Below are positions 10,603-35,274 of a stretch of 64,000 nt of DNA, one piece after another. The stretch spans positions 5,208,001 to 5,272,000 of the forward strand of contig OX337229.1 of the NCBI GenBank assembly GCA_946965045.2, written 5' to 3'. The stretch comes from Epithemia pelagica (Eukaryota; Protista; Bacillariophyta). The translations under genes were made by a program, and so were the position numbers. Under the pieces are notes generated by a model that was given only the letters and a program-made list of their open reading frames with translations, had not been told where the DNA came from and ran no database searches. The stretch's first letter is position 1, and each line of letters starts with the position of its first letter.

Positions 10603-10662
10603 CTTGCACAAAAAAAGGAAAAATCTTATTGGGTTTGACGTTATTGGATTTGACGTTTTTCC

Positions 10663-10667: not shown

Positions 10668-10668
10668 G

Positions 10669-13361: not shown

Positions 13362-13456
13362 TCTGGCGCTGTCTCAAAAAGTTTATATGGGACGATCACT
13401 GGGAACGGTTGGTAATGAGCAAGACAAACTGCCTAGAGCTATTATTATTTGATGGT

Positions 13457-13480
13457 GATGATGATGATGATGATGATGAT
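13457..13480. repeat. (GAT)8 microsatellite
   Basis: Eight consecutive GAT units. Confidence 0.95.
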
Positions 13481-14040
13481 GAAGTTATTTCTTGTGAGGA
13501 ACTTGCACAATATTGCAACGTTGTCGTTGTGGGCGTTGTTTGTATGTGTCAAGAGCGTCCCAAGGCTTGTTTTTTGATTGGCTCCAATAATGTTCCAGCG
13601 CCAACCCGGCCGGCGGACGCGAAGGATACCTATCACTGAGTTCGGGTGACGGCGAACGCCAGCCCATTTACAGGAATCCATTCGGAAGCAACGGCTCTTC
13701 CCAACAAGAGTCGAGCATGGCGTGACGCAAGTGTCCCGGAGCGTCCTTCTAACTAATCCACGATCAAGATCAAACCATAGAGCGAACGAGAAGCCGTGGC
13801 GTCTCCCCATTTTAAATCTCTGAAATAATTGAGTCCGTTTGACGTGCCGGACACGTGTGCTCTTTCCGAACGGCAAAGGATCGATTGGTAGTTTCAACGG
13901 AAAAGGTAGGGGATAGCTTTTTTTCCCATGTTGTAGTTGTTCCTACTCCTCTATTCTAATGTCCTCAACCCATTTAGAATTGGAGAAAACGAGAAAAAGT
14001 AAAGCCTATGCTCTGAGTCTCTAGGATTTCTCTATGCATT

Positions 14041-17000
14041 TTATAACGTTCCATTTTCTTTGCGTTCAAAGTATTCCTCCAAGGAGATGCCTTGTCGTTT
14101 GCGCTCTCGTTTGCGTTTCTTGGCCATGGCGGCGGCAATCGAATCCGGAGCGGCTGCCCCCACAGCCACCAAGGATGCGGCAATCATGGAATGGTCCTTG
14201 GCCAAGGCTTCTTCGTCAATGACAAACTGGTGGGGTTGATTTACCGTCATGCTCGAGGACAATCCTCCGCCGCCGTCCTCTTGCACCAAATGAGGCGCCG
14301 GAACGTCCTCCTCCTCCTCTTCCATAACCGCATCTTCCGGCGCTGTACCTTCTTTGGTGTCGGAGGCATCTTGTTTCTTGCTGGAGTCTTGTCCTTCTTC
14401 CTGTTTCACGGCAGTATCACCATTTTCGTTTTCATCGTCATCGCCATCCTTGTCTTGGTCTTGTCCGACCTTCCATAGAATCTTGGGCTTGACTTTACGA
14501 CGCGCATACGGATTGAACTCGGCAGCACCTCCACCAGCAGCGTTGTTCCCAGCGTTGCTGGCTTTCGTGGCGTCCTTGTTGGCTTCTCGATCCGCTCGTT
14601 GATTTTCCGCCAACGCACGTTGATTGACCTTGGCCCAATTGCGATCTTTCGATCGAGCGTTGAGACGACGTTTCCGATCTTCCACCTCCTGCAACAGGCG
14701 TTTCTCTTCCAACTGACGCTGATCCAACAGTTCCTTGGCCTTGTTCAATTCCTCTTGCGCATCTCCTACAGCCTTGTTCAAGTCATGCTCATCTTCATTT
14801 TCACCCGCTTCCATTAACCGTGATTTGGATTCCGTCAATTTCCGTTCCGCCTCGGCCAGGCCATCTCGTGCCGCCTGGACGGCAATCGCCACCCGTGTTT
14901 GTTCAGATCCCAAATTTCCCAACGTCTTGCCCAGTTTCTTTTTCTTTTCCAAATTCCGTTCAATGTCTTCGTTGGTATACGTGTAGTTGTTGACTAAGTT
15001 GTCCTGGACACGGCGTAACTTGTTGGCTCGACGTTTGGACAAGACTTCTTGACGGATATTCTTTTGCGCATAGACATATTTTTGGACATCCTTGGCATCC
15101 GGAGGGGCATCGGAAACCAGGCTCATGGGGAATTCTCGTTCACTACTACCGAATTTCAAACGCAGCATTTGGTTGGTCGTAATCGGTTTGTCCCCCTTTT
15201 TGGTCACTGGAAATTTGTAGGTAATGTTGCCCGTCTGAACATCGACAATCTCACACAAACGATACACTTTTTCGTTGGATTCGTCTTCTCCAATAAACAG
15301 ACGGACAAAGCATTCCAACACAGCTGCCTTGAAAAAGGGCTCATTGCACCAACGAGCCAAACGGCGACGAGGAATCGTTACCATTTGATATTCTTCCAGC
15401 GAAGCTTCGACCACAGACGAATCTGCACCCTTCCCGTCCTCCCCTCCCAATTTGCCCTTTTCACCCAACGCGCCCTCTTCATCCCCGGAATCAGCCGCGC
15501 TTTGATCCAAACGTGATACGGCCCCGTCCTTGGTTGTTTCCGTAGCGTGTTGCCAAGGCGCTTCATAGTCGCCGTCCGAATCTTCATCCGAATCATCTCC
15601 AAAGTCTTCCTCACTGTCATCATCACTGTCGGCCGCTCCCGATTGTTGTTTCTGTAATTTACGATTTTTCTTCAAGGCCGCCAAGGCTGCAGCCTTTTTG
15701 CTCTTGGCACCCGTCGCATCCTTATCGCGAATGGATTCGCGTTTTCCTGCACCTGCCAATTTACGAGCCAATTCTTCATCACCTTCTGTGGCGTCTGCTG
15801 GCGTTGCCCCCGAGGATTTGGCTTTTTTCGAAGCTGGTGCCTTTACGTCGCTGTCCGATCCGCGCTTTTTGGATTTGGGTGCCTTGGAAGTGGAACCTCC
15901 TGCGCCCGCCTTGGCTTTCTTGGCTTCTCGAATAGCCTTTTTCATATCGTACTGTTCCTTCAGCTTTTCAAACCGCTCACCGAGAATAGCCTCACGTTCC
16001 AATTCTGGTAGGGAATCCAAATACTTACGATCCTCGTCGTCCCGAATCAGAGCCTCTGTATTATTTTCGTCGAGTTCCATTTCGTCTTCGCCATCATCGT
16101 CCTCGTCACTGCTAATGTCGTCGTCTCCAAAAATTTCTTCATTTTCCTCAATCACAATCTTCTTCCGTGAAGCAGCCGCTCGCTTGGGACGTGCGGGAGA
16201 TGCACTAGAGGCTTTTTTGGGAGAAGGTTTGGTCTTTTTGGCAGCTGGCTTCTTCTTTCCTTTGCTCTTCGAAGGACCTTCTTCGTAGTCATCATCGTCG
16301 TCGTCCTCTTCCGATTCTTCCTCCTCCTCCATTTCCTCTTCTTCTTCAGACTCTTCTTCTTCCTCCTCCTCCTCCTCTTCTTCTTCGGATTCCTCTTTTT
16401 TACGGCGTAACTGCTTACCACCTGCAGGAGACCGACTTATAGAAACAGGTTGCTTTTTCTTGGGAGATGCCGTAGCTTTCCCCTTTTTCGCTTCCGCTTC
16501 CGGTCGTCTCAGTTGTTTGCCACGGGGAGCTGTGGTGACTTTATTGGCAGCACCTTTTTTGGTTGTTGCTGTCTTGGTCTCCGATTCGTCCTCCTCTTCG
16601 TCCTCCTCTTCCGATGCCTTGGGAGAAGCGCGTAATTGTTTGCCACGAACCACAGGTTTCACGACTTTCTTACTGGAGCTTGCTGCCTTTTTCGGTGGAG
16701 CACTTGCTTTGGGTTCCTTTTCTTCTTCGTCGTCGTCTTCATCATTTTGTGTTGGTGGACGTAGTTGCTTTCCTCTGCGAGGACTTGGTTGTACCTTTAC
16801 TGTAGGCTTAATGGAGGAAGATGGTTTGGGTGCCGCAGCCGCCTTTGAATCCGTTGTTTCCTTGGCCTGAGGGGGGCGCAGTTGTTTGCCACGACCGACA
16901 GGTTTTGCTACAACTTGTTGCGTTTTGGTTTCCTTGACTGGAGGTTCTTCTTCCTCCTCCTCTTCTTCGTCATCCTCATCCGAATCCTCTACTTCGTCTC

Positions 17001-18377
17001 CGGGAGGTGGCCGCAAGAGAGACAACATTTTCCCACCTCCCCGAGGAACTACACGAATCGGTTGTTGTGGTGGTGGTGGTGCCGGTGCCGGAGCTGCCGG
17101 TGTAGGTGCCACAACTGCTTCAGGTTGTGTGTGTAGATTGTCTTCTTTGGCAGCTGCCGTCAAGTCTTCAACCTCCATGGCCGACCCTTTCCCTTCCTGA
17201 TCCTCGTCCTCATCTTCCTCGTCGTCTTCTTGAGGTGGAGGCTGCATGCGCATCAAACTTTTCCCGCCACCGCGGCGAGCCACTTGCACGGTTTGCGTTC
17301 GAGGAGGCTCCGGTGCTTCTTCTTCCTCATCATCGTCCTCGTCTTCTTCGTCCTCAGCTGGTGGTGGTCGCATCCTCATTAAACTCTTACCACCCCCACG
17401 CGGGTGGTGGGCTACTTGTACTCGTTCCACAGTGGGCTCTTTTGAGGCATGATTGTCGTCGCCATCTTTGAGGTCTTCGTCGTCATCCTCAAGTTCTTCA
17501 TTTTCGTCGTCGTCATCTTCTTCTTCTGGTGGAGGAGGCATGCGCATCAGGCTTTTTCCTCCACCCCGGGGCGCAACCTGTACTCGTTGTACCTGCGCTG
17601 GCTCTTGCTCTGCCTCCTTCAAGTCCTCTTCATCGTCCTTGAGTTCCTCGTCTTCGTCATCATCATCGTCGTCATCCTCCTCATGTGCAGGTGGAGGCAT
17701 TCGAAGAAGACTCTTACCACCACCTCGTTGCGCTAGTTGCACACGATGAACGGGTGCTGCGGGTTCTTCTTCTTCATCGTCATCGTCTTCATCGTCATCT
17801 TCGTCCTCTTCTTCCGCAGGTGGTCGCATTCTCATCAAACTCTTCCCGCCGCCTCGAGGATGATGATGTTGCTGAGGTTGTACCCGAACCGGCTCGGTCT
17901 CTTCCTCCTCGTCGTCCTTCAAATCTTCTTCATCGTCTTTGAGTTCTTCGTCCGAATCATCCTCGTCGTCGTCGTCCGCAGGCCTGCATTAGTGTCAATC
18001 AACAGTTTTATGTAAGTTCACCTCTTCATCAAGACACTTCCTCCAGAACTCGGACCAGCAGAATGCAACGCTTGCTTGTTGTTGTCTTTCTCTCCACTTA
18101 CCCCGGTGGTCGGAGATATTTCCCTCCCGCAGGTCGTTGAAATTGCTTGCCACCCCCTCGAAAGGCTACGGCAGCTGCGGCATGCGGTTGGGACGGAGGC
18201 TGCGTTTCCAAGCGCTCTTCCTCTTCTTCTTCGTCATCCTCGTCGTCGTCATCGTCATCGTCCGAATCCGATTCGTCGTCGACTGGGCCTCCTCCTTGGG
18301 GTGGACGAAAATACTTGCCGCCACCGCCACTGCCCATGGCACTCAATTGTTTGCCTCCCCCACGGCTGGGAGCCACA

Positions 18378-18410
<33 letters not shown>

Positions 18411-18677
18411 GGCCGCGAACTGGGTTCGTCCGAATCGTCATCGTCGTCAAACCGCCGTTTTTGTTCGCCAGGAAAGGTACGACGAATGTTGGGCTGTGAC
18501 CGACAACAACATACAAGCAAACCCCGAATCCAACGGTTTATGGTCGGTGCAAAGAAAGGATCAAAGAAATGAGTCGTTGGAGCAAGACAATCAAGTCTAC
18601 CAATCCTTTCGTGCTCCATTTGGAAATGGTACCTTTTGGACTGTTTGGAAGACCAGTTTCGACACACGACGTACCAT
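14041..18677 (-). CDS. RTF1: RTF1 (Paf1 complex subunit) with a very long repetitive N-terminal arm
   Basis: HMD-like DEDRKYLDSLPELEREAILGER and Plus3 VTIPRRRLARWCNEPFFKAAVLECFVRLFIG. Model join(18675-18677, 18102-18493, 14041-17983). Introns 18494-18674 (GTACGT..CACAG) and 17984-18101 (GTAAGT..CTAATGCAG) are both frame-compatible. Confidence 0.9.
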
Positions 18678-19296
18678 CTTATAACAATACCTCCACGATA
18701 ATCAATTTAGATTCCCTATACGAAAAGGAGCAGAGAGAACTCTGGACGTGGGAGAGAAGCAACACCGACAAGGCACAGCAACGGGTCCACCCAGATGTAC
18801 TTGATCATTGTGGCATCTCGCTTATCCTAAACCCAGGCGCTTACTGGATATATCGTTCATATACTTCTTCTAACCTCTTATGCTTGAATCTCTGAGGATT
18901 TGAGCAGTCGCAGATAAAGGAATAGCACTACTTTTCATTACGCTTCAGCAACTTTGCGTCACGTTTGGTCGTGATACATATGTGTGATCTTCGACAAATT
19001 GTACCTTTGCGACACAGGTGCGACGCAATAAATATTACCGTGAGGGAGTACCATATTATCCTTTTTTTTGGTGTGACAGATCGAAGTTGCTCTGAAAAGA
19101 GGATCCATCCCATGACGATGGAGGAACTACCACTACGATAGGTCGTGTTCCAAAACGTCCTGTTGTGGCACATCCTATTCGAGTAGATTCAAAGGGTGTT
19201 ATTATGTATCCAAACAGATTTGTCGGCTGCTGCCACTGCTGTGGAATGGGCAGACTCTTGACCTTCTACATTTCTCTAGCCTTGGGCTTGTTGTTG

Positions 19297-22200
19297 TCAT
19301 CGTCGTCGTCCAGTAGTTTTTTGGAGCAACAAGGAGTGTTCGAGGGCCGTCAAACCCAGCACCCACAAGGTCAAGACCATCCAGGCCAGGCGGACCGAAC
19401 CCAAGGGCCAATAGCCCATGGTGGCGGCCAAGACATTGCCATTTTGCAAGACACAGGTGGCAAAACTTTGACAGGATGGAACTTCTCCCAAATGATCCGT
19501 ATTGTGCTCGTATTGATTCAAAACGACACCGGCACTGGCCCAAAATCGTGGAAACACCGCAAACAGCCATTGCAACTGTTGGGGAGCCTTGTGAGGTCCC
19601 ACCAAAATGCCGGCAAAACACAAATTGAGGAGCAAAAACACGAGGTGAATGCGAAAGAAACCACTCTGACCATCAAACCACAAGCTTAAACATCGACCAA
19701 AGGTGACAGTCACCACCAACAAGGCCTGGCCCAAGACAACCTGATTCCAAATCAAAATGAGAGATGTGGTCCAGTTCAAAATAGCAAACCCAAGGACCGT
19801 GGCCACGGTTAAGGATACCAAAGGAATACTGAGGGAATGCACCAAACTGGCCACGTGATAGGAAGCGACGGTAATGCGGCCATCTTGCAATTCGGCTTTG
19901 TGATCGAGCCAGAGTTGCGCACCGAACAATACATGAATCTGAAACAATAAAATGGGAACAAACAAAAAGACCACGGCCCCCAAGGTTACCGTTTTGGGCG
20001 AGTAAGGATCCAGTCGCAACAAGCCAGCCATGAGAGCGACCACGAGGGGTGTCACGACCAAATCCAACCATCCAGACCCATACTGCAATCGCATGCGACG
20101 TCCCATGGCACCCACTTGAGACAAGGCCGATCGATTCTTCGTTTTGTGGTCTTGTGGGGATTGTTGGTGTGGAAGAATGATGGTTGTGTCATGAACCGTT
20201 GAGTCGTGGGGACTGGAGGTCGACACAATGGTGGAGGAGGATGACGATGCGAATGTTTCATTTTGTTGTTGATTCCTACTCGTATCCAACAAATCGTTGG
20301 AACCCGTCTTGTTCTGTTTGTACAATGCCAAATTGCGTTGGACAAACGAAGGCAACCGGCCATGACGAATCACACGCCCCATGACTTCGGACAGTCGCAT
20401 GGAATGTGCCGGTCCTTGTGGCAGTGCATCACGTTCCGCCTTGTTCTTGTCGATTCTTGGCTGTTGCAATACCAACTCCAGGTCTCGTCGTGATTCGTTC
20501 AAGACGACGCGACCCTTTTGGAGGACGACCAATTGATCCAATTGAGACAAGGTTTCGTCCGAAGGTTGATGCAAGGATACCAGGACAGTACACTGGCGTC
20601 GTTGCACCCAGGAACGACGCAACAAGTGCAAGATGCGACGTGTCGTGGCACTGTCCAACCCTGAAAGAGGCTATAGATATACAGGGAGAGAGAGAGAGAA
20701 AAAGTCCCAACCACATTCGAACCCAAAACGTGTCGTGAGCACGAACTGCATCGTGGGATCCTCATTCAATACACCATCGTTGGGTTCCACAAAACGTACC
20801 TCATCCAACAACAAGACAAACGGATTGGTCATTAAGGCAGCCGCCACGGCCAAGACTCGTCGTTGTCCTCCACTACATTGGTGAATGCGCGCAGAGTGAA
20901 ACGATCCCAGGGTGGATGGAACCGAGGCCAAACGAACAGTGTCAGTGGCACGCCTGGGGTTATGAACACTGTTGTTTCCCTTGTCAAGATGATCATTGTT
21001 ACCGTCGTCTGGGTGATTGTCCGGAACTCTCTGTCCTTCCCGACTTTTACTATTGCTGGCAAGGCTGGCAACCTTCAAGGATGGCGTTGCTGCTGAATGG
21101 ATCTCAGTAAGACCACAGTCGGTGTTTTCCTCATAAGCTAGAGCGTCATCATGGGCGACCTGATCCGAGTGCAAAGCCTTTGTATGCTGGTGCACATTCA
21201 ATCGCTCAAATCCCAACATGGACAAGACATCGAGTGCACCATGGTCAATGGTCTGCGCCAAGTCTACGTCACTGATGGGATTGCTCGTGACACTAACATG
21301 ATCGCGGTTTGCTTCCTTATCGCTGTGAAAGACCACTTTCTCGCTTTCCTGGTCCAACGGATCATCGTCGTTGATCATATTCTCATTCTCTCCTTCTTCC
21401 TCCTCCTCCTCCTCTTCTTCATCTCTGCCCAGGAAAAAGGGAATGACAAATCGGAGTACCTCCTCCATGACGTTGTAATCCGCTCGATACAAATCCGCGC
21501 TCGATATCAAAAAGGATACCGGTGTCATGTGTCCCATGGTCACGACATCCGATTGTCGTAAGTACGTTGTATGCTTCAGGTTTCGTTGGACTCCAGCAAC
21601 AGATGATGATGATTGGGTCATGGAACCAGATTCGGTCAACTGAACCTCCGATCGAAGCTGCCCGCTCAAGGCACCCATCTGTTTCCCGGCTTGCTTTCAA
21701 AATGGATATTGTCAAGCAATTTCACTTCTTGTGATTCAGACGGCGATTGCAGACCATGTCGAAAAAAAGAGTTCCCAAGACAGTTTCTCTTGGATTCCGA
21801 CATGACTGTGGCTGTCAATCCCTGGACCACAATACCATGCGTATTCACATCGCATGCCAACGTACGATCACATGCTCCTTGGCGAACGGAACGCGCCTCG
21901 CCCTCTTCTAGATGCCGCCCCTCTCGGGCCGCCTCCAAGTCATTACAACTGCAGTTACTTTCCTCGGCACTGGCAAGACTCAGATCCTCTGCATGATTTG
22001 TCTCGTGTGTATTCTGGTTTTGCTGGCCTTTGAAACTCCGACTCAAGCTTGCGGTGTATGCCGTCGTCACCGAGGAAAGTACATTGGTATCCTTCTTTTT
22101 GTTCTTGTTGAAGGTTGAATTGGATTCTACGGGTTCCTTCTTCCCCACCCTGCCCTTGTGGACTGAGAAACAAGAGTGAGTCGCTGGAAAGTGAAGGATC

Positions 22201-24003
22201 TGGGCGAGAATGCGTCCTCCATGTTTGGTGCGAATCACCAGACCCAACAAGACAAACAAGGCCACGTAGACAAAGCAAACGATTCGAAGTGATTCCCCGA
22301 CCTCCTCGTAGGTACTTTGTATTTCAAACAAGGGTTGACAGGCATGTTGCGCCGTGGTTTCCGGATCCCGTATACAATTGGGACCGGCACAATCCTCCAC
22401 CAGTAATCCAAAGCGTTGCGTTTCTCCCGTGACCGGGTCGGGACCAAGGACAGCCTCGACACCTTCCGTCACAAACAAGCCAACAATCTCTTGAATGGAC
22501 CGTCCTTGAATGGTTGCCATTTCCCACAAGGCAATATCGTACCACAAGGTTCCTCGTAGGCCCGACAATGCGCTGGTCAGTTCCATGGACAAGCCAAAGC
22601 CCGTTTCGCGACAGTGTGATTCGTGATGCTCTTGTCCCAACAAGCCTCCCTTGCATGACATAGCCCTCTACTCCTAAATTTGCACAGGCCAATTGATGAA
22701 TTTCCAAGGCTGGAAAGAAAAAGCCATGTGTTAAACACGAGGGCATGATCCACGCCAAGGTGGGCCACCTGGAAGAGGATGATGATGTGGATTCCACATT
22801 CGCCGCAGGACGAGTGTCGTCCTCCATAGTGGGACAAGTGCTCTGGTTGTGATGATTGTTGTAGAGATGCGGCAAATGCGCAAACAAGGTCTCTTGTGTG
22901 GCACGCAATCGGGAGCCCATGCGTTCTACCACGGCTGTATTCTTTTCGACGAAATCACTGGGACTGGTAATGGTCAATTCCCAGGGTTCTGACGAGGATG
23001 TTGGTGAAGAACCAGGTAACGACGTGGATGACAGCCCTCGTTTTGATGGCGACTCGTCTTGATCGTCGGACGGAAACAAGTCTCGCAAGGAAAACAAAAT
23101 ACCCAAGACATCGTAGGTGGAGTCGAGCAACAAGAAGGATTCTTGGACAGGTTTTTGATTGGACGACGACAAGTCAGTGGATACTGGCGGTGGCGGCGTA
23201 AAGACGCCATTTCGAGCCATGCATTGCGTCGAGGCACAACATGGCAAATTGGACAAGGATTCATGCATGTTTTGGTTGGTAACCGAGGTTGCCTGGGTGG
23301 TTGTAGTAGTTGTGCAAAGGGGATGTCGTGTCTTGTTGACCGTATCCATATCAAACAAGCTCAAATCGGCAAAGTCACTCGTCATGGAGGAATCCACAAG
23401 TACCTTGAGATGGTTGATACCATTCATGCGTTGGGCGGCCGTTCTCAAGTCGGGAATGTGATTCAAGACACCCGTCGCTCCAGCCGAAATGCCCAAGGCA
23501 ATCAATTGTCCACCACCACCGTCGTTGTCTTGTTGGGGGGCCCTACCATTTGTGGTGGTGGTGCTTCGAGCTTGATATTCTTGCACCATGTATTCGAGAA
23601 CATGTTGAAAGTGCAAATCGCCATGACGGTAAATACCCGTTTCTTGCATGACCCCAGCGCCGAGAAACATGTCTTGCGAGCAGTAATAAACGGCGAATTT
23701 GACTGCATTGTGCAACACTGGATTGACGGTTGAATCATTGGATAAAATGTTGTGTCCTTGAATCTGCAAGGGCGCATACCGCGACGAAAACCGAAAAGGT
23801 TCGCCGTACATAACGTCTTGACATTGTTCCGGGGTTCCACACAAGCCACCTCCCAGAAAGACCAAGACAATATTGGGATTGGCAGTTGCAGTATCGTTTT
23901 TGCGTTGCCGAAGTGCCGACCAATCCTCGTAAAGACCCACGGGTGATCCATCGCCGCACTTGGCGCTGGAAAAGGATTCCAAGGAGATCCAATCCAAGGG
24001 CAT
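19297..24003 (-). CDS. Copy A: Notum/pectin-acetylesterase-like hydrolase + TM + ABCG half-transporter; disrupted as assembled and lacking Walker A (possible pseudogene)
   Basis: Hydrolase motifs AKCGDGSP, FLGGG, GISAG, STYD and CLTH; TM IVCFVYVALFVLLGLVI; ABC motifs YLRQSD, CSGGQRR, LLLDE|PLSGLD (intron 20671-20799) and VSLHQP; ABC2-type TM region. Frame changes near 22660 and near 21680, where no P-loop is found. Confidence 0.8.
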
Positions 24004-24458
24004 GTTTGTTGCCTGGCGCTTGCTTGGCTGGTGGTTGGTATTTTGAGAAGACCGCTCGGAATAGATGCCAAAGCATATAGGGAACAAGATCTATCGTGTA
24101 TTGTGTGTGTTGTGCATGAAGCAGATGAGGCGACTCTTTTTGAGGAAACAAAAAAAACCCCGAGATGTATCCACAATCTTGTGTTGAGTTTCATGTTCCA
24201 AGTTCCAAAATGACGGCAGGAACAAACAAAAAACCGTAACAGACTTGACGATCAAAGATTCTGTTTTCTCATCCGCATTGCTCCACAGAAACCGTAACGA
24301 CCCTGGCTACCTGCGAGGTGCTAGATTGATCGGGTTGCTTGCACTTGTTTTGGATTGCTCCTCCTCTCTATACTCTACTAGTTGATTGAAGAGCAACTTT
24401 CTCGATCTTACAGATAAAGAGGTAGATCCTTGAGCAGAATCCACAGTCCAAAACGATC

Positions 24459-27400
24459 ATGCCCATGCAATGGATTTCCTTGCAGAATGTATCGAACGCC
24501 AAATGTGGTGATGGTAGTCCAGTGGGACTTTATCAAGGAGAAGCACCAGACACTATGGATGAATCCAACCGCCATCACCACCACCACCACAACAACAATC
24601 ATGTCTTGGTCTTTCTCGGTCATCATCCCAGCCACAACAGTGCTCCTTGTTTGTCGGATTCGGATTGTGCCAAAGTCCTTGAGGAAGAACCCTACCGATT
24701 TTCCTCTCGTTATGCACCTCCCCAATTCCACGGCCAGGGACTCTTGTCCAACGACCCAGCACTCAATCCAGTTTTGTATGCCTTTCACAAATGGGCCGTG
24801 TACGATTGTTCCAACGATTGGTACTTGGGGTCATCTTCTTCCTCCTCGTCCTCCGTGAGGAGTGGCACAATTTATCGACACGGTCATGATCATGTCCAAA
24901 GTGTCTTGGACCATGTGGTCCAACACAGCACCAAACACAACCACCACAACCAGAACAAGAAAACGGGCCAATTGGTGGTGGTGGGCATTTCGTCCAGTGG
25001 CACCTTGGGGACCTTGAATCAGTTACCAGCCCTTCGAAGAGCGGCCCAGGAATTGGGTGTGGCCAAACTCAAACTCGTCTTGGAGGAGGTTTCATCCTCC
25101 TCCACCTCCGCCCTGTCATCATCACGCGTGTGGAAGACAGATTTCAAGACACGATTAAATCTAGCCACTCTGGTGAACCGATCCCAACATCCTCTCTGTT
25201 ATCAAACGGCCAACCACTTGCGGTTGGTTGCGGGTCTGGAACGTCTCAGAGACAAAGAAGAAGAAGAAGATGATGATGAAACTTCTTCAATTCCGTGTTG
25301 TCTCTCGACACACTGTCTCTTGCAAAGAGGCATCTTGACACCACCCCAACCCATGTTGTCGCCGTCAACCACCGCCACTAACGATACGACAGTCGTACTC
25401 GAAGAATCGGTATTGGTTTTGGATTCGACCTACGATGTACATAGTACCTGGCAATCCTTGGCTCGTCGTGGTCCTCATGATTGGAACAACAACGAGGACA
25501 ACCCCAAAGATGGTAGCTTCACTGCTAGTACGAGTCAGTCGGTGGAAACTGCCTTGGCTGTGGTGGAGACCATGGGGGCACGCCTCCAGGTGACACACGA
25601 AACCATCAAGAATGTGACTGCTACTGTTCGTCCTGCTGCCACCACAACGTTTCTTCAAGTGCCACCCGCTTCTGTCACATGGCTGGTGTCATCCTGTTGG
25701 ACTCAAGGATTCTTGTTTCCGGCCATGCCAATCAATCAATTGGCCTGTAAATGGAGTGCCAACAACAGCGACGAGTGGACCACGCAATGTCCCGCCCCAT
25801 TCGAAGACGACATGAAAGAACCCATGATGGGTCATTCCAGTCTCTTGTTGCCACCCTCACTCCATGCCACTTTGTGGTATCATCCCCATGTATGGGAATG
25901 GGCCTCGGTTCATGGGCAATCCATTCGTGATTGGATTGGAACATTTGTCCATTTTGCGGAGGGATCGTCTTCCACCATGATACCGACGGGACTGGTTTTG
26001 GACCATTGTGTCGGTCCCAATTGTCTGGATCATAACGGAGGAGTCCTCGTCGATTCCAAACAACCCCATGCCTGCCAAGCCTTGTTTCAAATTGAATCCA
26101 CGTACCAGGAAGTGAATCTTGCTGTTCGAACGACATGGTTTGTCTACCTGGCCTTGTTTGCTTTGTTAGGGATTTGGATCCAATCGGGGGCTCCTCATCG
26201 TAAGCAAAGATTGTACCGCAAAAGTCACGACAACAACAGCAACAACACACGGAACAATGGGTTCGATCTACTACTACAGCACCTTCGTCAGTGGTTTTGG
26301 CGGCAGGCGGTGGTCCAATGGTTGCTTGGTCGGCGATGGGGCGGTATTCTACCCATCAAGAAGGACTTCCACAAACCGACGTCATCACAGCAACAACCAG
26401 AAGGAGAAACAGAACGCACAAACGATACAACGCCAACGTCAAATGAAGAACAAAACAGAGACAATGAGGACAACGAGAGAGCACACCGCAGCATAGTCAA
26501 GCTCACCAATGTGACGGTTCAGTTCCGTCAATCAACGGCCCCTTCTTCTTTGGCCCGTTTCCGTGGCTGTCGTGTCGTACAGCGGTGGGTATACGTGTTC
26601 TCTTCTTCATCATCAAGGAATGCTAGATGCTCTCAAACCAACTAGCAGAATCAGCAAACGGCACAACAGCGACCCCCTATTTGCAAAAGCCAGCATCCGA
26701 AACGCTCCAAAAAGAATACCAACACGGCCTCTCTGACGAGCACTACTAGATCGAGCAATCCTACTACTTCCAAGAAATTGTTGGATAGTATTCATCTCGA
26801 ACTACAACCAGGTACATTGAATGGTCTGTTGGGACGATCTGGGTCGGGAAAGTCCACATTGGTAAGACGAAAGACGATGGTTAATCTTTTTGCCTAGAAT
26901 GTTTGTAATCTCATGATTTGTACTTTCTCTTTGTTGACTTCTTGTTTTCTTTGGAATGACGACCACCTTCTTCTAGCTAAGTACCATGTGCGGCCAAATG
27001 CGTTCGGGTCTAGCATTGGATCCCAGAAGTAAAATTGAAATGGACCGAGAGAATACGACGTATCTTAGACAACATGACGTGGTTGCCATGGGCAACATGA
27101 CACCGGCCGCGTACTTGCAATCGTGTTCCGAGTTGTACGGGGCCGACCCAAGCCTCCACGCTCAAGTGCAAGCCTTTGTGCAGCAGTTTTTCTCAAACAA
27201 AAAGGAGAGTGACGAGGATGTGGAATGTGCGTATGGTTTGGTGCAAGTTGAGGATAGGATTAACAGTGCTGTCCAGGACCACGAGGAAGAGAGCCTGTCG
27301 TTGGCCCAAAATCGCGAGACGGTTTCTAGTGGACCACCTTCTAATGCATCGGAAAGAAACGATGCATACGTTCCTACTGCTCTTGAAGGTAAACAAGCTT

Positions 27401-29132
27401 CAAGCAAGAAGGATCCCTTCCTTACCTCCAAAACTACCAGTGAGGATGACAAGATGCAAAATCTGGATCAATTGACTACTAAGCAAGTCAGGAATGACGA
27501 CGAAGAGATGCAAAGCAAAACAAGCACATATACTAAACCAATTATCGTCGTGAAAGCCCCACTTGATCCCCAAGCGGACGTCGCCTCATCAGGAGCAGCA
27601 CTCCCTTCTAACCGATCAGGAATACCGCCTGCTTCGACTCATTTGATGGTAGTCAACGCATATCAAGCACCGACATGTCGTCCGATGGCCAAGTCATCGA
27701 TGGACCGTTTGGGGTGAACAAAATTAGCAAATGCAGTGGTGGTCAGCGGCGTATTCTTGCCATCGCCGCGGCTCTATTAACCAACCCGTTGGTGCTATTG
27801 TTGGACGAGGTAGGTTGGTGGATATAACTACTCGTGTGGCATGAAACCATTCCCGTTGCTATATGTGATCATAACGTCTCACCCCCGACAATGCTTTGGT
27901 GTACTCTTCAGCCACTCTCGGGTTTGGACACTGTGGCAAGTGAAAGGTTAATGGAGTTTCTGAGGAATCTCGCTTACCATCAAGGTCGAACTATTTTGAT
28001 ATCTCTCCATCAACCGTCCGATACGATCCTTCGTTACTTTGATACGATAGTCCTTATGATATAAGGCAGGATTGTTCTCGACCAAACAGTGCCCTTGTTG
28101 TTACAAGCCCTGGCATTGCAGGAATTCACTGTTGAACCTCCATCTCTTTCAAGATTTGTGAATCAGGTCGTTCGGTTTGCTGCTGTTTCTGTGTCTATGA
28201 GGTCGAGTATCCAACAATTGCTCGAAGACGATGCGGTACCATCCTCATCGTCACTGGTGGCACAAAGGGTCCCAGGAAACGGCGTGATGTGGAAGAAGAA
28301 GAAAGCCAGACGGAACCCATTTTCCCAAGTCGTAGCTATGGGTCATCGACTTCGTTTGCAATACGGTTCAAACATTTTTGATATCGTGGTGTTACCCATT
28401 GCTTTTGCCATTATGGCCTATATTCTCAACTTTGATGGTCACTCACCCAAGAAAACTACCATTGGATGCATGATGCTCTTTTTCATTCCCATTATTATAG
28501 TTCAAAACCATGTCTTGTTGGGTACAAAAATATGGGTGGATCATGGATTCGAACTGGACGATGGCCGCGTCTTTTTGGCTTCTTATCAAGTTGCCTCCCT
28601 CTTATACTGCCTTTCGATTGCGGTTTTATCTACTTTGGTCTCTTTGGCAATTGCCTATGCTATTTTGGAGTGGGATTGGGCCTCCTTCCCGAATCAGCTG
28701 GTATTTGGATGTGTCTATTTGCTGCTTATTATTGGCTTTGGACGGTGCTTGAGTTTGGTATTCAATGGAGACTACATCTTTTTTCGAGTATATCTGCTCG
28801 TTATTTTCCTGAACATTTGCCTTGCAGGATATCTATCCACGCCTGGTCAAGCTCCCGAGAGTGTACGGTGGCTTTTTAGCCTGTCGTTTACATTTTGGGC
28901 CTTTGCTGGCGTATTGACGAATCAATTTGAACATAACAAGGATATTGGTGGAGAGAACCCGTGCCAAAGCTTTGCCACCTGTGTCATGTACAATGGTGAT
29001 TTTTTGGCTGCCTATTCGGGCTTTTGGCCCTTTGGCAATACCCGTCTGGCACTCAATGTACTGACTGGAATCTATCTCGTGTTTGTAGTTGCCGAGTATT
29101 GGCTGCTCCGGCTTCGACGAGCACATGCGTAG
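24459..29132 (+). CDS. Copy B: Notum/pectin-acetylesterase-like domain + TM + ABCG half-transporter; in-frame stop as assembled (possible pseudogene)
   Basis: AKCGDGSP; Walker A GRSGSGKST (26832-26858); introns 26862-26976 and 27810-27911; CSGGQRR, LLLDE|PLSGLD and ISLHQP; TM domain 28089-29132. In-frame TAG at 26643 (removable by a 57-nt GT-AG intron 26589-26645), an unresolved frame change near 27620, and in-frame TAA at 28062-28064 (LMI*GRIVL versus VLQKGRVVL in copy A). Confidence 0.8.
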
Positions 29133-29849
29133 AGCAGGATCTCGCCCTCTGCATCTGGTTCACGGTTCTACTGAACATCGGGTACAAGTAAACCGTTCTA
29201 TGAACATCAAATCCTGCTGTAGGAACACAAAAGCATGTAATTCCACCCCTTAAAAAAGAAAAATCGTCTCGATGGGCGCGCATGCTCGTTCTCGTAGTTT
29301 TCAAGCAGTCCCGTTCGCCTCCACACGAGTAATCATGATGTGTTACGTAAACTCGCGTCTATCCTCGAAATGATAAAACAACCATGAAAGTTCGCGGTTC
29401 TTATATGTCCAACATGCATTTATACTCTCATTCAGAGTACGGAAGCAGAGAGCGAATTGAGATTGCAACCAAATACAGCTGCAGTTTGCATCACGTCGTG
29501 TAGAATTCTTCCTGGCTGGGTTCCCATCACCCATCACCATCCTGCATGTGTTGTAGTGGATGCGGATGCATGAGTGTGCATCAGTATGGTACGCGAACCT
29601 GAGTGGTCATTGATGAAACCCTTGAAGGGAGAAAGCTCAACCAATCCTTGCTGGACCAAACTCTATGAGTTACAAAATTGGGAACCACGAATGCGCAATC
29701 CAGGGTCTACCAAGTGCTTGGTTGGACGGCATCAGAAAACCAGGAGGAGCGAAGGACTGAGGACGAGTAGTCCAACAACGAAAGGATGTACCGAGGCAAA
29801 CCACCTAGGTATGACCTTGTCGGAGATGTTCCAGTGCTTTCATCGCATC

Positions 29850-31841
29850 TTATGTATATTCATGTTCTATTCCAGGCTGGACGCATAGTCCGTCCACAAC
29901 ATTCTTGAGCAATTCCGTTGCTTGCTCCCGTTCACCACGATCACGGTACAGTAACGCCAATTTATACTTGTAGCGGAGACTAAGTGGATGTTGATCCCCC
30001 ATCAATCGACAATTGTGCTCCACGGCTTGACAAATGAGGGATTCGGTTTCTTCTCCCAAATTCTTTTCCAGTCGAAGAATGTCACCCAAGTTAGACATTG
30101 CGGTAAGAGTGCGAAAGTTACAGTCCCCATACTGTTGCCGTAGCCCCGAAATTGCTTCGCGAAGCAACGATGCTGCTTCCTTCAAGTCACCTTGATCCTG
30201 CTTCAGTTTTGCAAAGTTGTTGATTGACATGAGGGTATGCGGATGATACTTGCCCATACGCTGTCGTAGACCTTCGAGCGATTCTCGAAATAGCCGCTCG
30301 GATTGACTAAGTTTTCCTCTACAACGCAATACTTCGGCCAAATTGTTCATTGAAGCAAGCGTGTCCGGGTTTTGGTTCCCCAACTTTCGTCGGCGCCCTT
30401 TTAAGACTTCACCATGTAGGACTTCAGCCTCGTTCAACTTCCCCTTGTATCGACACAGTTCTGCCATGCTGGAAATTGAAGATAACGTCTGTACATGATG
30501 ACTTCCCAGTTGTGCACGCCGCCCGTTCAAAGCTTGACGACAAAGCGCTTCGGCTTCTTCAAACTTTCCTTGTAATTGAAGGACCGTCGACAGATTGTCA
30601 AGAATCAGAAAAGTTAGCCGATCCTTTGATGGATCTTTGTTGCCAGACGGCCATGGTCGATTTGTCAACCATTGATGACGGCGTTCTAGAGCTTCACGAT
30701 ACAACACCTCCGCTTCTGCAAAGTGTTGCTGACTGTCGAGCAGAAGTGCGACGTTGTTCAGATGTGCAGGGTTGATTACGCTACTTCGTCGACGCATGCG
30801 CTCTAAATGGGAGCGGGCAACATGAGTAAGCCATTCACGCATTTTGGCAACAACAATGCTGTTGACATTTGAGAGTCCTTGTTTTCGCATCCAATGCAAC
30901 AGGACAGTTCGATCATGATCATTTTCCGCCTTTCCGTTGTTCGCATCTACTTTGGAAAGAGATTGCTGGATGGTTTTGAATTCTGTGACACTCTCAATGC
31001 AATTTGTGACAAAGTGCTCTAGTTGGGCTTGCGACAGAAGCACGACCAGGTCCGCACCGGCCTCTGCTGTACAAAATATTTCCCACAGGACCCAAATCTG
31101 TTTCAACGTGCGCATCACGTCGTTCAACTTTTCCAGAACAAGCGCTGTTTTGCCGATCCGTTTGATTTGACGTTGCAAATCGTTCATGAGGATTTTCGCA
31201 AACTCATGGACTTGGACATGTCCCTTTTTGCCCGTCCAGGTGACTTGGTCGACACAGAAAATGTCCATCCAAATATAATCCTCTGGTGGTAGTGTGGTCA
31301 ACACTTGCACCAGGTGCCGAAGAGTGTAGCCGCCAGTGTAGGATATGAAGCGAGTAGCGGGCGATACAATGACAGAGGGATATGAAAACAAGCGGCTTTC
31401 CCCTTCCTGATTCCTGGAACCAATCTGACTGACAAAGGGACCCGGGGGAACCAGAAAGGCGTGGTCAACCTTGCGTTCTTTCACCCATTGTCGAATGATT
31501 TCAATGATGCATACTTTGCGCACAAACCACAGCTCGCAACCAAATTCTTGCAGCAACTTCATGTAGGGCGACTGGCAAAACACCTCCACGAACCAACTGG
31601 CCTGGATTCCATTCCAGGAAACGAGACTGGTTGCTGTTTGAGGGAGAGGGCTATTACGCAAGTCTTGAATGATTTCAGGAATTGTTTGTCCATCTTGTTC
31701 CGTTACTCCCTGCGCTTGATCGTAGAGTCGACTGGCCAATTCTACCTGGTGTTCCAGACTGGCCTTGTGGTTATGGTATTGGAGCCATTCGGAAAAGCTG
31801 CTGGTTTTCGTGAGATAGTCCCTCCACCACTCATCTTGCAT
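29850..31841 (-). CDS. HET-like domain + kinesin-light-chain-type TPR repeat protein
   Basis: FISYTGG, WMDIFCVDQ and WVLWEIF motifs, followed by ~42-aa repeats (LGxxHPxTLxSxNNLAxxL...G...EAE). Confidence 0.75.
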   Translation of the reverse strand: MQDEWWRDYLTKTSSFSEWLQYHNHKASLEHQVELASRLYDQAQGVTEQDGQTIPEIIQDLRNSPLPQTATSLVSWNGIQASWFVEVFCQSPYMKLLQEFGCELWFVRKVCIIEIIRQWVKERKVDHAFLVPPGPFVSQIGSRNQEGESRLFSYPSVIVSPATRFISYTGGYTLRHLVQVLTTLPPEDYIWMDIFCVDQVTWTGKKGHVQVHEFAKILMNDLQRQIKRIGKTALVLEKLNDVMRTLKQIWVLWEIFCTAEAGADLVVLLSQAQLEHFVTNCIESVTEFKTIQQSLSKVDANNGKAENDHDRTVLLHWMRKQGLSNVNSIVVAKMREWLTHVARSHLERMRRRSSVINPAHLNNVALLLDSQQHFAEAEVLYREALERRHQWLTNRPWPSGNKDPSKDRLTFLILDNLSTVLQLQGKFEEAEALCRQALNGRRAQLGSHHVQTLSSISSMAELCRYKGKLNEAEVLHGEVLKGRRRKLGNQNPDTLASMNNLAEVLRCRGKLSQSERLFRESLEGLRQRMGKYHPHTLMSINNFAKLKQDQGDLKEAASLLREAISGLRQQYGDCNFRTLTAMSNLGDILRLEKNLGEETESLICQAVEHNCRLMGDQHPLSLRYKYKLALLYRDRGEREQATELLKNVVDGLCVQPGIEHEYT

Positions 31842-33264
31842 GGACTGTTCCTCGGGGTCTGCTTAGCAGCGAGACAAGAGAGAAATGCTAGTAAAACCCT
31901 TTTCAAGTAAAAACAAAAAACAGAAAAATTCATTGTTCCATTCCGTTCAAGTCGTACCGAGGTATTCCTTCTTCATGCGGTGTTGATGCTTTCGTTTCCT
32001 CGTGTTGTCAGATTAACCACAGGACAAGCACCACGCATGTGAGCGATCCCCTGTCGTGGCGCGATAGCAGGTCCCCACAATAGGACTCATGCCGCAATCC
32101 TGACAACGCCACTGCCGGCCATGAATCGAAAGTCGCTTTACACTCAAGGCTTTGGCCATGGTACCCTAGTCTTTCGATGTTCGACGTCGGAGAGAGGTAA
32201 GAAGAAAGGGTGATGGTTCTCTACCGCAGAAGCAGAAAGGGGTGTTCGACTTGGACACATGGAACGACACAGACGGAAGGATGCGAGAGCCGTCACATGG
32301 CACGGAGTCGTGATTGCGCAGTTGCGACCAACTGCGAGTTCCTTGTTTTGCGTCAATCGCGCTCTGGCAGCTGGTCCCGCAATCGAAAAATTCGGACACG
32401 TGAAAGCCACCATGACTCAATCATGAGCTTGTGATGTACCGACCAAACCAAGAAGAAGTAGAAGTAGAGGAAATCAGACGACTCAAACTTCTTGGACCTC
32501 GAACAAAGACATTTCAGTCCATTTTGTTCTCAGAATGTGAGGTACCAATCTCAGGCGGAGGTTCTTCTAAGAAAGCCGTATAGTTTAGGTTCCGAATATA
32601 CTGTTCACTTGAGCCCCTTTAGCCACCGTCATGTGATGTAGAAGGCGTATGCGATCGCGAAAGGGTTGTCCAGTTGCATGTTGTTCTCGGTTCTCGGGAT
32701 CGTTCTGAATCCCACCGGTCTGCCAGATCGGTGCGGATACCTGAAAACATGAGGGAAACCAAATTCTTGATATTGATGGGTTTGTCGTGAGAAACGACTT
32801 GGAGTCTCGTAGAGAATATGGACCTGCGGATTTGCAAAGGGCGCCGCGGGACGGGTCGGCGTTTGGGGGATGATGGATGGACGACTTGTAACTGCAGAAT
32901 ACCCGATGGATGTAGAGTGCGTCATGGTGTCACACTCCAACTGACAGGCCCATCCAGACTCACAATGCTTCACCATAGCCCGCAAAAACTTTGATGAAAA
33001 ATCTGACGGAGTCGACAATAAATAGAGCGGAGTCGAGTCGTTTGGGGAGTCATTGGGGGACTTGTACAGTTCGGTCTCGCGAGGAATTGCCCCAAAAATT
33101 TGGCGTCTCCTTGACCTGTCCACAAAATTGCTTCAACTCCCAGAAAACCAAAACAAAAGAGACAACCTCTCTATACAAAGACCTGATGTCCATGACACTC
33201 GAGGCATTGCAGTTCTCATAAAAAGGCCACACGCCATCCATCAAACACCTTCCACTTCATAAAA

Positions 33265-34146
33265 ATGCGTATGGAAATGAATGACTCGCCTCTCGTCCAC
33301 GGTCGAACTACAATGACAAACGGCGGTTGCACCAGTACATGGTGTTGTGGCGTCGAAGACAATGACACTTTTATCCAAAAGCCTCACTGTTTGACTGACA
33401 CCGACGATTCGGGTTCGGTGACATCGATATGTACTGATAGAACCAGTACGTCCTCTACCTCCTCTTCGAGTGCATGTCCACTCCGACGAGCCTCTTCGAT
33501 ATCATCTTCCGGTTCCTTCGTGTACAATCGATCGGTGAGCTTCAATTTGAAAGCCAATCAGTTTGTCGAGCACGATGAACGCCATGCTGTTCCCGCGGAA
33601 CATACATGGTACCACGCCGAGGAGTTGATGAGTATGAAGAAACAAGCAGTGGCGCAAGCCAGAGACTTTTTCGTCTACAATCCCCAAGCGCTTTACACCC
33701 GAGACATTTTGGGATCAATCTATGAATACGCACGCATGAACAGTGAGAGTAACGGGGTAACGGATGAATCTCAGCCACCAACAAGATCATGGCTTCCATC
33801 TTTACCACGGTCGGTCATTGAAAATGGTCTACGACAACAATTGTCGCATCAGGTGTACCAATCCAGTGCGGGCGATGTCGTTGTGGGTCTGGAACGTATA
33901 TTGGTGGGTGGTATCATCACCAACAACAAGCAGGCTCGACGAGAAGTACTCTTGGCATTGAAAAACATGAAGGAAACCTCGGCCGACTATGTTCACCAGC
34001 TGTTGCAACACTCTTCCTGTTGGGCATTGTGGCAACAGGCCACAACCTCCTCCCGGGTGTTTGCTCATGAACTCGCCTTGGCTCTTGAAGCGTCCTTGCA
34101 GACTAACACTGCCACTACCATTGAAGAAATCCCGACCCTGGTGTAA
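33265..34146 (+). CDS. Unnamed diatom-type family protein, paralogue 1
   Basis: Ser-rich N-terminus, then SVSFNLKAN, WYHAEELMSMKKQA, ILGSIY and GLERILVG; shared with the next two ORFs. Confidence 0.7.
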   Translation: MRMEMNDSPLVHGRTTMTNGGCTSTWCCGVEDNDTFIQKPHCLTDTDDSGSVTSICTDRTSTSSTSSSSACPLRRASSISSSGSFVYNRSVSFNLKANQFVEHDERHAVPAEHTWYHAEELMSMKKQAVAQARDFFVYNPQALYTRDILGSIYEYARMNSESNGVTDESQPPTRSWLPSLPRSVIENGLRQQLSHQVYQSSAGDVVVGLERILVGGIITNNKQARREVLLALKNMKETSADYVHQLLQHSSCWALWQQATTSSRVFAHELALALEASLQTNTATTIEEIPTLV

Positions 34147-34479
34147 GTGGTGTAAGACGATCCACCAAAAGACATGCTCGAATTGGGGAGAAACATGACG
34201 ACATCTAACCTCACTAGAGACCAATAGACCTGGGACACGACACCGAACCAAGATAAATGTGAACAGAAACATTGCTTCCACATAGAACACCCTATGACTC
34301 CTTTTCTCAACATGGCAATGATGATGACCTTATTCGTGTCGAAACAGATCAAGAAACGTCTGAGAACCATGAATTAAACTACGTATACAAACCGACGGGT
34401 ATTAGCTCTAGTAAACTTCTTGTAACATTCCATTTGAACAGTGTAAACAACATGAGGTGGGGAGGCCGATTCTCCTCTT

Positions 34480-35274
34480 TTATTGCTGCAGGTCAGCAAT
34501 AGCAGTTGTTGTGCTTTCCGCCAAGGCAACCGCAAGCTCTTGAGCAAAGACTCGGGATGGATAGTTTATCGATGTCTGCTGAAAGCGAGGAGATCGTTTG
34601 ATATGCTTCGTCACTTTCTTGGATGTGGTTCCGACATGAAATGATTGAATGAACTTGACATAAGCTTTCATACGAGCCTGTTCGTTGTGATCCCAAAGCA
34701 CACTTCCCACAATGATTCGCTCCAATCCCAATATGGTGATCTCACCCTCAACTCCAATGTCCTCCTCGTGGTTGAGATACAAGTGCGCTAGTTTTTGTCG
34801 TAGAATTCGAGCTTGATCGGTGCAATTTTCGTCCTGATGGGTGTGATCAGCTCGACATCGAATCGTTTCACGACTTTCCTTGTAGAGTCTGCCCAATATA
34901 CGTCGACTTTTTGCTCCTGGGCCCGCTTTGCCCAATCGAAACAGTTGGGCCTCTTTTATTGCTTCACGCCTCATTTGTTGCAGTTCTCGGTTGGAATAAT
35001 AATAGCAATTTTCCTGTATCCTATCAGTTTCCTCTTGTGCTCTATCAACCAAAATATGACGTAAATCTTGGTGATCTGGCATATACACTTGATTGGCTAT
35101 GAGATTAAAGTGGACAGAACGAGTGGCACCTTCTTTTCTCTTGAGAATACATGCTTCGGAAGTTGAAGCTGGAGTGGTCTTGAGATTGTCGTCTGTATTA
35201 ATAGTATGAACGCAGCTCATGACCGACGACGACGAGGACTTCGATTCATCTGTTGGAGACAGCATGGTCGTCAA
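34480..35274 (-). CDS. Unnamed diatom-type family protein, paralogue 2
   Basis: SVHFNLIAN, YYSNRELQQMRREA, ILGRLY, GLERIIVG and SRVFAQELAVAL. Confidence 0.7.
   Translation of the reverse strand: MTTMLSPTDESKSSSSSVMSCVHTINTDDNLKTTPASTSEACILKRKEGATRSVHFNLIANQVYMPDHQDLRHILVDRAQEETDRIQENCYYYSNRELQQMRREAIKEAQLFRLGKAGPGAKSRRILGRLYKESRETIRCRADHTHQDENCTDQARILRQKLAHLYLNHEEDIGVEGEITILGLERIIVGSVLWDHNEQARMKAYVKFIQSFHVGTTSKKVTKHIKRSPRFQQTSINYPSRVFAQELAVALAESTTTAIADLQQ

Follow-up and report, generated by a model that had tools for sequence, protein, structure and literature searches.

A divergent pair of probable esterase-ABCG fusion pseudogenes in the diatom Epithemia pelagica

ABCG half-transporters function as exporters or floppases and are obligate dimers; their cargo comprises lipids, sterols, waxes and hormones. 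Notum and the pectin acetylesterases (PAEs) are serine carboxylesterases that act on O-acyl or O-acetyl groups outside the cell, Notum-type esterases stripping acyl groups from secreted molecules. To our knowledge, the physical coupling of transport to chemical modification is not an established principle for ABCG proteins. Here, we describe a locus of Epithemia pelagica at which both modules occur in two divergently oriented genes, hereafter A and B. The locus lies in a 64,000-nt stretch of contig OX337229.1 (GCA_946965045.2), which we call the window and in which all positions are given unless another contig or locus is named; the closest relatives of its sequence are diatom proteins. A and B are most probably a divergent pair of old paralogues from a family of esterase-ABCG fusions, both being pseudogenes on both haplotypes, with B still transcribed and spliced.

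With regard to the hydrolase, the diatom proteins resemble Notum (palmitoleoyl-protein carboxylesterase; PDB 4UZ6, 4UYU) and plant PAEs in their profile match, their fold and a proposed Ser-Asp-His triad. However, Notum and the PAEs are free secreted enzymes, whereas the diatom domain is tethered by a transmembrane (TM) helix to an ABC transporter. The diatom family also adds a Cys-rich, beta-rich juxtamembrane module of ~150 aa, and its Pfam and sequence match to PAE spans only the N-terminal half of the profile. The transporter half resembles ABCG1, ABCG2, AtABCG16 and AtABCG25: a nucleotide-binding domain (NBD) is followed by a transmembrane domain (TMD), ABC_tran and ABC2_membrane are both recognised, and a model superposes on these proteins. 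In contrast to these half-transporters, with which it shares 15-21% identity, the diatom family exhibits long low-complexity inserts in the NBD, a ~550-aa N-terminal ectodomain and a seventh TM helix.

Human ABCG5 and ABCG8 encode paralogous half-transporters of the ABCG type, and a short spacer lies between their divergent transcription units. A and B are likewise divergent half-transporter paralogues with a short spacer (455 bp), but both are most probably pseudogenes, and their arrangement is not conserved in other diatoms or among other paralogues. The N-terminal region of Adp1 is extracytosolic and is followed by an extra TM helix. Yeast Adp1-type ABCGs (fungal clade V) are half-size proteins with additional N-terminal sequence ahead of the NBD (PMC9426558). 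Their overall layout is similar to that of the diatom fusion, but the extra region of Adp1 is most commonly an EGF-type module, whereas the diatom one is an enzyme, and we found no sequence relation between the extra domains of Adp1 and of the diatom proteins. The same single-chain architecture as in the E. pelagica family is exhibited by Seminavis robusta CAB9500321.1 and CAB9500561.1 and by Fragilariopsis cylindrus OEU07413.1, which are intact and solitary, most of them with a signal peptide.

Layout of the locus and lesions on two haplotypes

In the open reading frame (ORF) listing and a three-frame reading, ORF pieces fall into two sets, each the size of a gene, that are collinear with one another and lie on opposite strands. 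Gene A begins with an ATG at 24003 on the minus strand and ends with a stop at 19297; gene B extends from an ATG at 24459 on the plus strand to a stop at 29132. The two are collinear over ~4.7 kb by tblastx, and an alignment along their whole length at 35-70% amino-acid identity argues that they are old paralogues. The N-terminal ORFs of both exceed the Pfam gathering cut-off of PAE (PF03283, 26.6 bits), with 60.9 bits for A (E-value 1.5e-16) and 34.3 bits for B (1.9e-8), the match reaching only about the first 150-200 profile positions. Each gene encodes a single hydrophobic helix (~22283-22233 in A, ~26133-26180 in B) after the hydrolase and ahead of the NBD. ABC_tran is recognised in the middle piece of A (29.4 bits, cut-off 25), while the C-terminal ORFs of both genes match ABC2_membrane weakly, just below the cut-off. 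The TMDs of A and B are 48-50% identical, and the TMD ORFs of the window share 27-31% identity with P0009, a family member. The order of the pieces, with the NBD N-terminal to the TMD, is the same in A, in B and in full-length relatives.

Both genes are interrupted by a GT..AG intron exactly at DE|PLSGLD (20799-20671 in A, 129 nt; 27810-27911 in B, 102 nt), a position that A and B share with an intact paralogue, L003 gene 1. A second intron position, after GK(S/T)TL, is found in B, in gene A of the alternative haplotype and in the paralogue P0004. A sequence-only reading of this DNA had proposed a divergent paralogue pair with ATGs at 24003 and 24459, 455 bp apart, and a common DE|PLSGLD intron; ORF reading and tblastx collinearity confirm the former, and the GT..AG ends read from the sequence confirm the latter. 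It had also assigned a hydrolase, a TM helix, an ATPase and an ABC2-type TMD to each gene. The domains themselves are recovered by Pfam, the helix and tblastx, but the full chain is not, both genes being broken here; the lesions had gone unmentioned in that reading.

The second haplotype was reached through near-identical ORF fragments (P0001-P0003), which led to loci L001 and L002 of contig ERZ21939226 ctg1330l (ENA). These loci are 95-99.8% identical to the window. All four alleles, i.e. two genes on two haplotypes, carry disabling lesions, and at least nine independent lesions are present in ~10 kb over both haplotypes. The features of gene A and of the spacer in the window are the following:

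24004..24458, no strand: spacer between the ATGs, 455 bp; a contig of sequencing run X2 spans it but cannot show transcript starts
22653..24003, minus strand: exon 1, first part; PAE/Notum-like hydrolase core, from the ORF and Pfam PAE
22652, minus strand: lesion 1, an extra A causing a frameshift; missing from the alternative haplotype and from P0003
21684..22651, minus strand: exon 1, second part, in the shifted frame (ORF 22661..21666); collinear with gene B
21679..21684 (between 21683 and 21684), minus strand: lesion 2, junction of a 178-nt deletion, from alignment with the alternative haplotype
20800..21678, minus strand: exon 2; remaining NBD, containing a long acidic insert, the CSGGQRR signature and Walker B LLLDE
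20671..20799, minus strand: DE|PLSGLD intron, 129 nt, GTACGT..TATAG, read from the sequence
19297..20670, minus strand: exon 3; D-loop, H-loop SLHQPS, linker, ABC2-type TMD and stop (ORF 20658..19297)

The sequence of gene A in the window retains CGDGSP, the nucleophile motif GISAG (~23493-23479), DSTYD and the codon of the catalytic His (22728-22726, in SCLTHG). At the site of lesion 1, the other haplotype reads YVMQG|GLLGQ. The second part of exon 1 encodes the Cys-rich juxtamembrane ectodomain and the TM helix, followed by a linker and the beginning of the NBD (KLLDNIHFESKPG). The 178-nt deletion removes the coding part for Walker A and nearly the whole following intron and shifts the frame; no Walker A is present in any frame of gene A in the window. 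The same stretch of the other haplotype reads GLLGRSGAGKTTL, followed by a GTACGT..CACAG intron placed like the gene B intron after GKSTL. We also considered MGALSGQLRSEV of gene A as a degenerate Walker A P-loop with a 1-nt frameshift. This was rejected, because the window has lost Walker A and the intron in the 178-nt deletion, both being intact in the other haplotype.

For gene B, the following features are observed:

24459..26861, plus strand: exon 1; PAE/Notum-like domain, TM helix (~26133-26180), linker and NBD start, from the ORF and Pfam PAE
26643..26645, plus strand: lesion 1, in-frame TAG in exon 1; CAG (Gln) in the other haplotype, and P0001 reads Q
26862..26976, plus strand: intron after GKSTL, 115 nt, GT..AG; skipped in an 8088-nt contig of run X2
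26977..27809, plus strand: exon 2; rest of the NBD, with an insert, the CSGGQRR signature and Walker B LLLDE
after 27622, plus strand: lesion 2, 1-nt deletion causing a frameshift; the other haplotype has an extra C, and run X4 shows the inserted form
27810..27911, plus strand: DE|PLSGLD intron, 102 nt, GTAGGT..TTCAG, read from the sequence
27912..29132, plus strand: exon 3; D-loop, H-loop, ABC2-type TMD and normal stop
28063..28065, plus strand: lesion 3, in-frame TAA in a conserved segment after the H-loop; in both haplotypes

The set of NBD motifs of gene B is complete, including Walker A GRSGSGKST at 26832-26858, yet the NBD is broken by the frameshift and by the TAA right after the H-loop. 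At the TAA, gene B reads VLMI*GRIVLD (* denoting the stop), where A reads VVLQKGRVVLN and the intact paralogue VVLKQGKVVLD. The active site is degenerate: GxSxG has given way to GISSSG (24984-25001), and the catalytic His is replaced by Gln (25704-25706). Translation from the ATG gives an ORF of 728 aa (24459-26645), and a downstream TMD ORF of 347 aa is open. A short in-frame intron around the TAG at 26643 was considered, for which many GT..AG candidates exist. The other haplotype has CAG at this site in an open frame, so the TAG is a nonsense mutation and not part of an intron; no splice joint near it is listed in the X2 contig. A non-standard genetic code was likewise rejected, the stops being rare and polymorphic between the haplotypes.

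Gene A of the alternative haplotype keeps its Walker A (GRSGAGKT) and the following intron. Its lesions are a GAA to TAA change at 22127, a change of the catalytic His to Asn (22728) and a 472-nt deletion within the TMD. Gene B of this haplotype is split at 25438-25453 by a 9.4-kb non-LTR (long terminal repeat) retrotransposon (a long interspersed nuclear element with Exo_endo_phos and RVT_1), which lies at 483-9866 of L001 and is flanked by a 15-bp target duplication, ACATAGTACCTGGCA. A 376-bp relative of this element, 97% identical, is present in the window at 58802-59175, so the element family was recently active. The TAA at 28063 is the sole lesion common to both haplotypes; the other lesions are largely independent.

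The spacer of the other haplotype exhibits ~500 bp of extra non-coding sequence at ~24174, an 18-nt deletion and a 1-nt insertion. Divergence between the haplotypes, measured over 12332-36896 of the window against L001 and L002, is uneven: ~1.5% in gene A, ~0.6% in gene B, ~1% upstream of gene A and ~0.04% from 29300 to 36896.

Four runs of one study (X1-X4) hold the locus, and the read comparison covers 21655-27650. X1 and X3 are genome-assembly-like, with contigs of up to 0.5 Mb, and contain both forms of the 22651/22652 indel, each at about half depth, a pattern given by a heterozygous diploid. X2 contains both the deleted and the undeleted form of the 21683 junction. Both haplotypes are therefore present in the same samples. 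The retrotransposon allele is recognisable by contig breaks at 25438/25453 and by a T/A-rich loose end. In X2, the contigs total 39 Mb and reach at most 19.6 kb. An 8088-nt contig of this run aligns to 21683-26860 and resumes after a gap of exactly 115 nt with GT..AG ends (26862-26976); the hydrolase, TM and NBD parts of gene B are contiguous in it. No run on record as RNA was found to contain the locus; from its contig statistics and this one spliced joint, X2 is apparently RNA-derived. If so, gene B is transcribed and the intron after GKSTL is real.

The esterase-ABCG family in diatoms and in the E. pelagica genome

An exhaustive search of 1.84 billion proteins returned 69 representatives matching the first exon of gene B, many of them being 1000-1550 aa long and matching at their N-terminus. 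PAE and ABC_tran occur together on all seven chains tested with Pfam, five of which also exhibit ABC2_membrane. Members include the two S. robusta proteins (CAB9500321.1, encoded by Sro81_g043470, and CAB9500561.1) and F. cylindrus OEU07413.1, which are 28-33% identical to the A/B esterase domain, as well as a Skeletonema dohrnii model, an MMETSP transcript marked complete and metatranscriptome proteins. The S. robusta gene for P0013 is a single-exon, uninterrupted ORF of 4290 nt encoding 1429 aa; the esterase and the transporter are therefore one polypeptide in this family. These observations argue firmly for the existence of a single-chain esterase-ABCG fusion family in diatoms. Most members exhibit a signal-peptide-like start, the motif G-I/L/V-S-A-G-A, one TM helix, GRSGSGKS and a TMD with several hydrophobic helices, and the motifs of the NBD are conserved in the family. 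Three-part fusions also occur: in P0030, P0102 and P0103, from metatranscriptome and NCBI records, the PAE and ABC domains are preceded by a further N-terminal domain, a DBH-like copper type II monooxygenase (PF01082/PF03712).

The family profile matches human Notum with an E-value of 4e-30, through C-x-DGSP and the nucleophile motif (G-S-S-A-G-G / G-I-S-A-G-A). The ectodomain was modelled with AlphaFold from gene A of the alternative haplotype, which is 98% identical to gene A of the window (predicted local distance difference test score, pLDDT, 77.5; predicted TM-score, pTM, 0.82). The top 50 PDB matches of this model found by Foldseek are all Notum, with E-values of ~1e-12 and TM-scores by target of up to 0.56. 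The N-terminal domain is thus predicted to be a Notum-like alpha/beta hydrolase. Residues 520-1157 of P0009, comprising the NBD and the TMD, were modelled with a pLDDT of 75; ABCG1/2/5/8/16/25 account for each of the 50 best PDB matches, which extend over the full length with TM-scores by target of 0.62-0.76, and the model suggests an ABCG half-transporter fold for the C-terminal half of this protein. Among NCBIfam models, the best is TIGR00955 (White/ABCG), far below its cut-off, and none matches the hydrolase part; a search for look-alikes in the ESM Atlas returned generic ABCG clusters only.

The family thus appears to combine an ABCG half-transporter with a catalytic-type ectodomain, and it is present in databases, where the S. 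robusta and F. cylindrus members are named 'transporter G family member', 'ATP-binding protein' or 'hypothetical protein'. We found no paper describing an esterase-ABCG fusion in a full-text literature search. The sequence-only reading had regarded the N-terminal domain as an alpha/beta hydrolase, had proposed a search of other diatoms for PAE, ABC_tran and ABC2_membrane on one chain, and had named no known esterase-ABCG fusion. The model and the profile match to Notum support the first of these, such chains are found in Seminavis, Fragilariopsis, Skeletonema and MMETSP data, and the generic database names and the literature search agree with the last.

In an alignment of 24 family ectodomains, the proposed triad is conserved, with its Ser in G-x-S-A-G, its Asp in D-S-x-Y-D and its His in S-C-x-x-H. 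The nucleophile Ser is the sole triad residue aligned to Notum, and we take the Asp and the His to be the other members by their likeness to Notum/PAE motifs. The His is present in 22 of the 24 sequences, the exceptions being gene B (Gln) and gene A of the alternative haplotype (Asn), and the remaining aligned members read G-x-S-A/V/S-G at the nucleophile. In gene B, GISSSG and the change of His to Gln are found on both haplotypes, which indicates that its loss of esterase residues is long-standing; the Walker A deletion in A is, by the same comparison, private to one haplotype. Gene B is also aberrant in composition and sits on a long branch of the family tree, with a length of 1.4 compared with 0.5 for A. 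Differences between the haplotypes comprise 45 nonsynonymous and 23 synonymous changes in gene A and 20 and 10 in gene B. The ratio of nonsynonymous to synonymous polymorphism (pN/pS) is ~0.59 in both genes, a value that points to relaxed constraint on A and B.

All members have the N-terminal domain and the TM helix that follows it, and most relatives exhibit signal-peptide-like N-termini (P0007, P0010, P0011, P0013, P0016 and P0019). No signal peptide is recognisable in A, B, P0004, P0005 and P0024, in which the Met lies right at the region of the C-G-D-G-S/T motif, and nothing convincing as a signal-peptide exon was found upstream of A, B, P0004 and P0005. A signal-peptide-like, out-of-frame ORF starts at 24194 on the minus strand, within a stretch of frame-changing indels between the haplotypes. 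Despite the lack of a recognised signal peptide, this clade of five keeps all the conserved ectodomain cysteines.

In the family tree, the copies of the E. pelagica genome form a lineage-specific clade (support 100/97). There are five or more of them, including at least one intact gene and three or more dead ones. A tandem pair is located on ERZ21939226 ctg1320l, at 10001-13825 (gene 1) and ~16206-20165 (gene 2) of L003. Gene 1 is intact: it reads in one frame, retains all motifs and has two introns, both in frame, at the A/B positions, whereas gene 2 is a pseudogene with at least four in-frame stops and GISDAG. P0005 is a solitary copy on ctg1340l (L004, 10001-14278) with an intact esterase triad, a frame switch near 11430 and degenerate signature (THGQ), D-loop (PFHDMS) and H-loop (SLREP) motifs. 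This copy is either in decay or a partner with degenerate sites. Gene A groups with P0005 and not with gene B (94/83). No paralogue lies within 8 kb of the S. robusta and F. cylindrus genes, and the other paralogues of the E. pelagica genome are tandem or solitary, none being head-to-head among the loci examined. Judged from these loci, the head-to-head arrangement is not a feature of the family, and conserved head-to-head synteny, for which the sequence-only reading had proposed a search, is not observed.

Interpretation of the pair and of the family

The locus was initially thought to hold a working pair, with A and B co-regulated from a bidirectional promoter and their products forming an ABCG5/ABCG8-like heterodimer that exports and de-O-acylates a polysaccharide or lipid. 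We consider this very unlikely. Although the divergent orientation, the 455-bp spacer and the transcription suggested by the X2 contig are what such a pair would exhibit, four of four alleles are disabled, and the functional reading is already contradicted for the present state of the locus. The asymmetry of the two genes, in which A retains Ser, Asp and His and B does not, while B retains Walker A, could recall a heterodimer, as could the presence of the only shared lesion in B, followed by an independent decay of A on each haplotype, which fits a past dependence. Nevertheless, the esterase residues of B are lost, the arrangement is found neither at the Seminavis and Fragilariopsis loci nor among the other paralogues of the genome, and A groups with P0005 rather than with B, so that the two are not sister copies. 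A dead paralogue also stands in tandem beside an intact one elsewhere in the genome, so simple redundancy explains the decay. The history of the locus is most probably one of birth-and-death evolution after local duplications, not that of a working bidirectional heterodimer operon.

It is also unlikely, if somewhat easier to conceive, that the species keeps functional alleles of A, B or both and that the lesions reflect either errors of assembly or null alleles confined to one clone. The recent inactivation, the long ORFs, a pN/pS of 0.59 rather than 1, the privacy of most lesions to one haplotype and the origin of all runs from one study would agree with this. However, several runs contain the 22652 indel and the 21683 junction in contigs built from reads, two haplotypes that differ at 0.6-1.5% share the TAA at 28063, the catalytic residues of gene B are lost on both, and at least nine independent lesions in ~10 kb are difficult to attribute to errors or to a single clone. 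Hardly credible is the idea that the truncated products are functional, the 728-aa product of B acting, for example, as a membrane-anchored dead esterase with a binding role, or the TMD being translated separately. The ORF 24459-26645 is intact and transcribed, and the 347-aa TMD ORF downstream is still open, but in the other haplotype the same ORF is interrupted by the 9.4-kb retrotransposon, and the TAG that ends it is CAG, so the truncation is not conserved. In addition, no family member of such a shape stands out, the short matches being contig or ORF fragments.

The reading of A and B as pseudogenes on both haplotypes, with B still transcribed, has several points against it. Long open frames and conserved motifs persist in both genes, and the inactivation is therefore recent; the population may still hold intact alleles, and a truncated product could keep some function. 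The assignment of X2 to RNA rests on contig statistics and one spliced joint, the kind of the run not being on record, and contigs cannot show the hydrolase and ABC parts on one molecule at this locus. The 472-nt deletion of the alternative haplotype and the TAA at 28063 come from assemblies, outside the read coverage, and the two haplotypes available derive from one study, possibly from the same reads as the window. The topology of the A/B clade, apparently devoid of a recognisable signal peptide, is unexplained, and the mechanism proposed below for the family, export-coupled deacylation, is drawn by analogy.

For the intact members, the predicted layout is a signal peptide, an extracytosolic esterase with the Cys-rich module, a TM helix, a cytosolic NBD and a TMD. 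The signal peptide would place the esterase on the extracytosolic side, and the extra TM helix would bring the polypeptide back across the membrane, so that the NBD is cytosolic. Dimerisation of two chains would follow the mode of ABCG half-transporters, and at the outer face the tethered esterase would deacylate or deacetylate a substrate that is lipid-like or a glycan. By analogy with Notum and the ABCGs, we tentatively suggest that intact members may dimerise in this manner and present or extrude their substrate to the tethered esterase, a scheme that is possible and by no means the probable one. A broader version, which we consider rather doubtful, holds that this 'enzyme-capped' ABCG family deacylates its cargo on exit, some members with a DBH-like monooxygenase, and that A and B are what is left of an asymmetric heterodimer in which only one of the two esterases was live, and which collapsed after B acquired the shared TAA. 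The location of the sole shared lesion in B and the later, independent decay of A fit a former dependence of A on B. Redundancy with the intact paralogue explains this pattern equally well.

The covalent fusion of an esterase to an ABCG transporter, conserved in pennate and centric diatoms alike, suggests that transport may be physically coupled to chemical modification at the outer face of the membrane, with possible consequences for the surface chemistry, exopolymers or lipid signalling of diatoms. The locus also calls for caution in annotation, since long conserved ORFs and transcription masked two genes that are most probably dead on both haplotypes, and what looks like a reciprocal loss of motifs in A and B is in part a deletion specific to one haplotype.

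Downstream of the pair, a gene encoding a TPR-repeat protein of 663 aa lies on the minus strand (29850-31841) and converges on the 3' end of gene B. The X2 contig appears to extend past the stop codon of gene B toward this gene.

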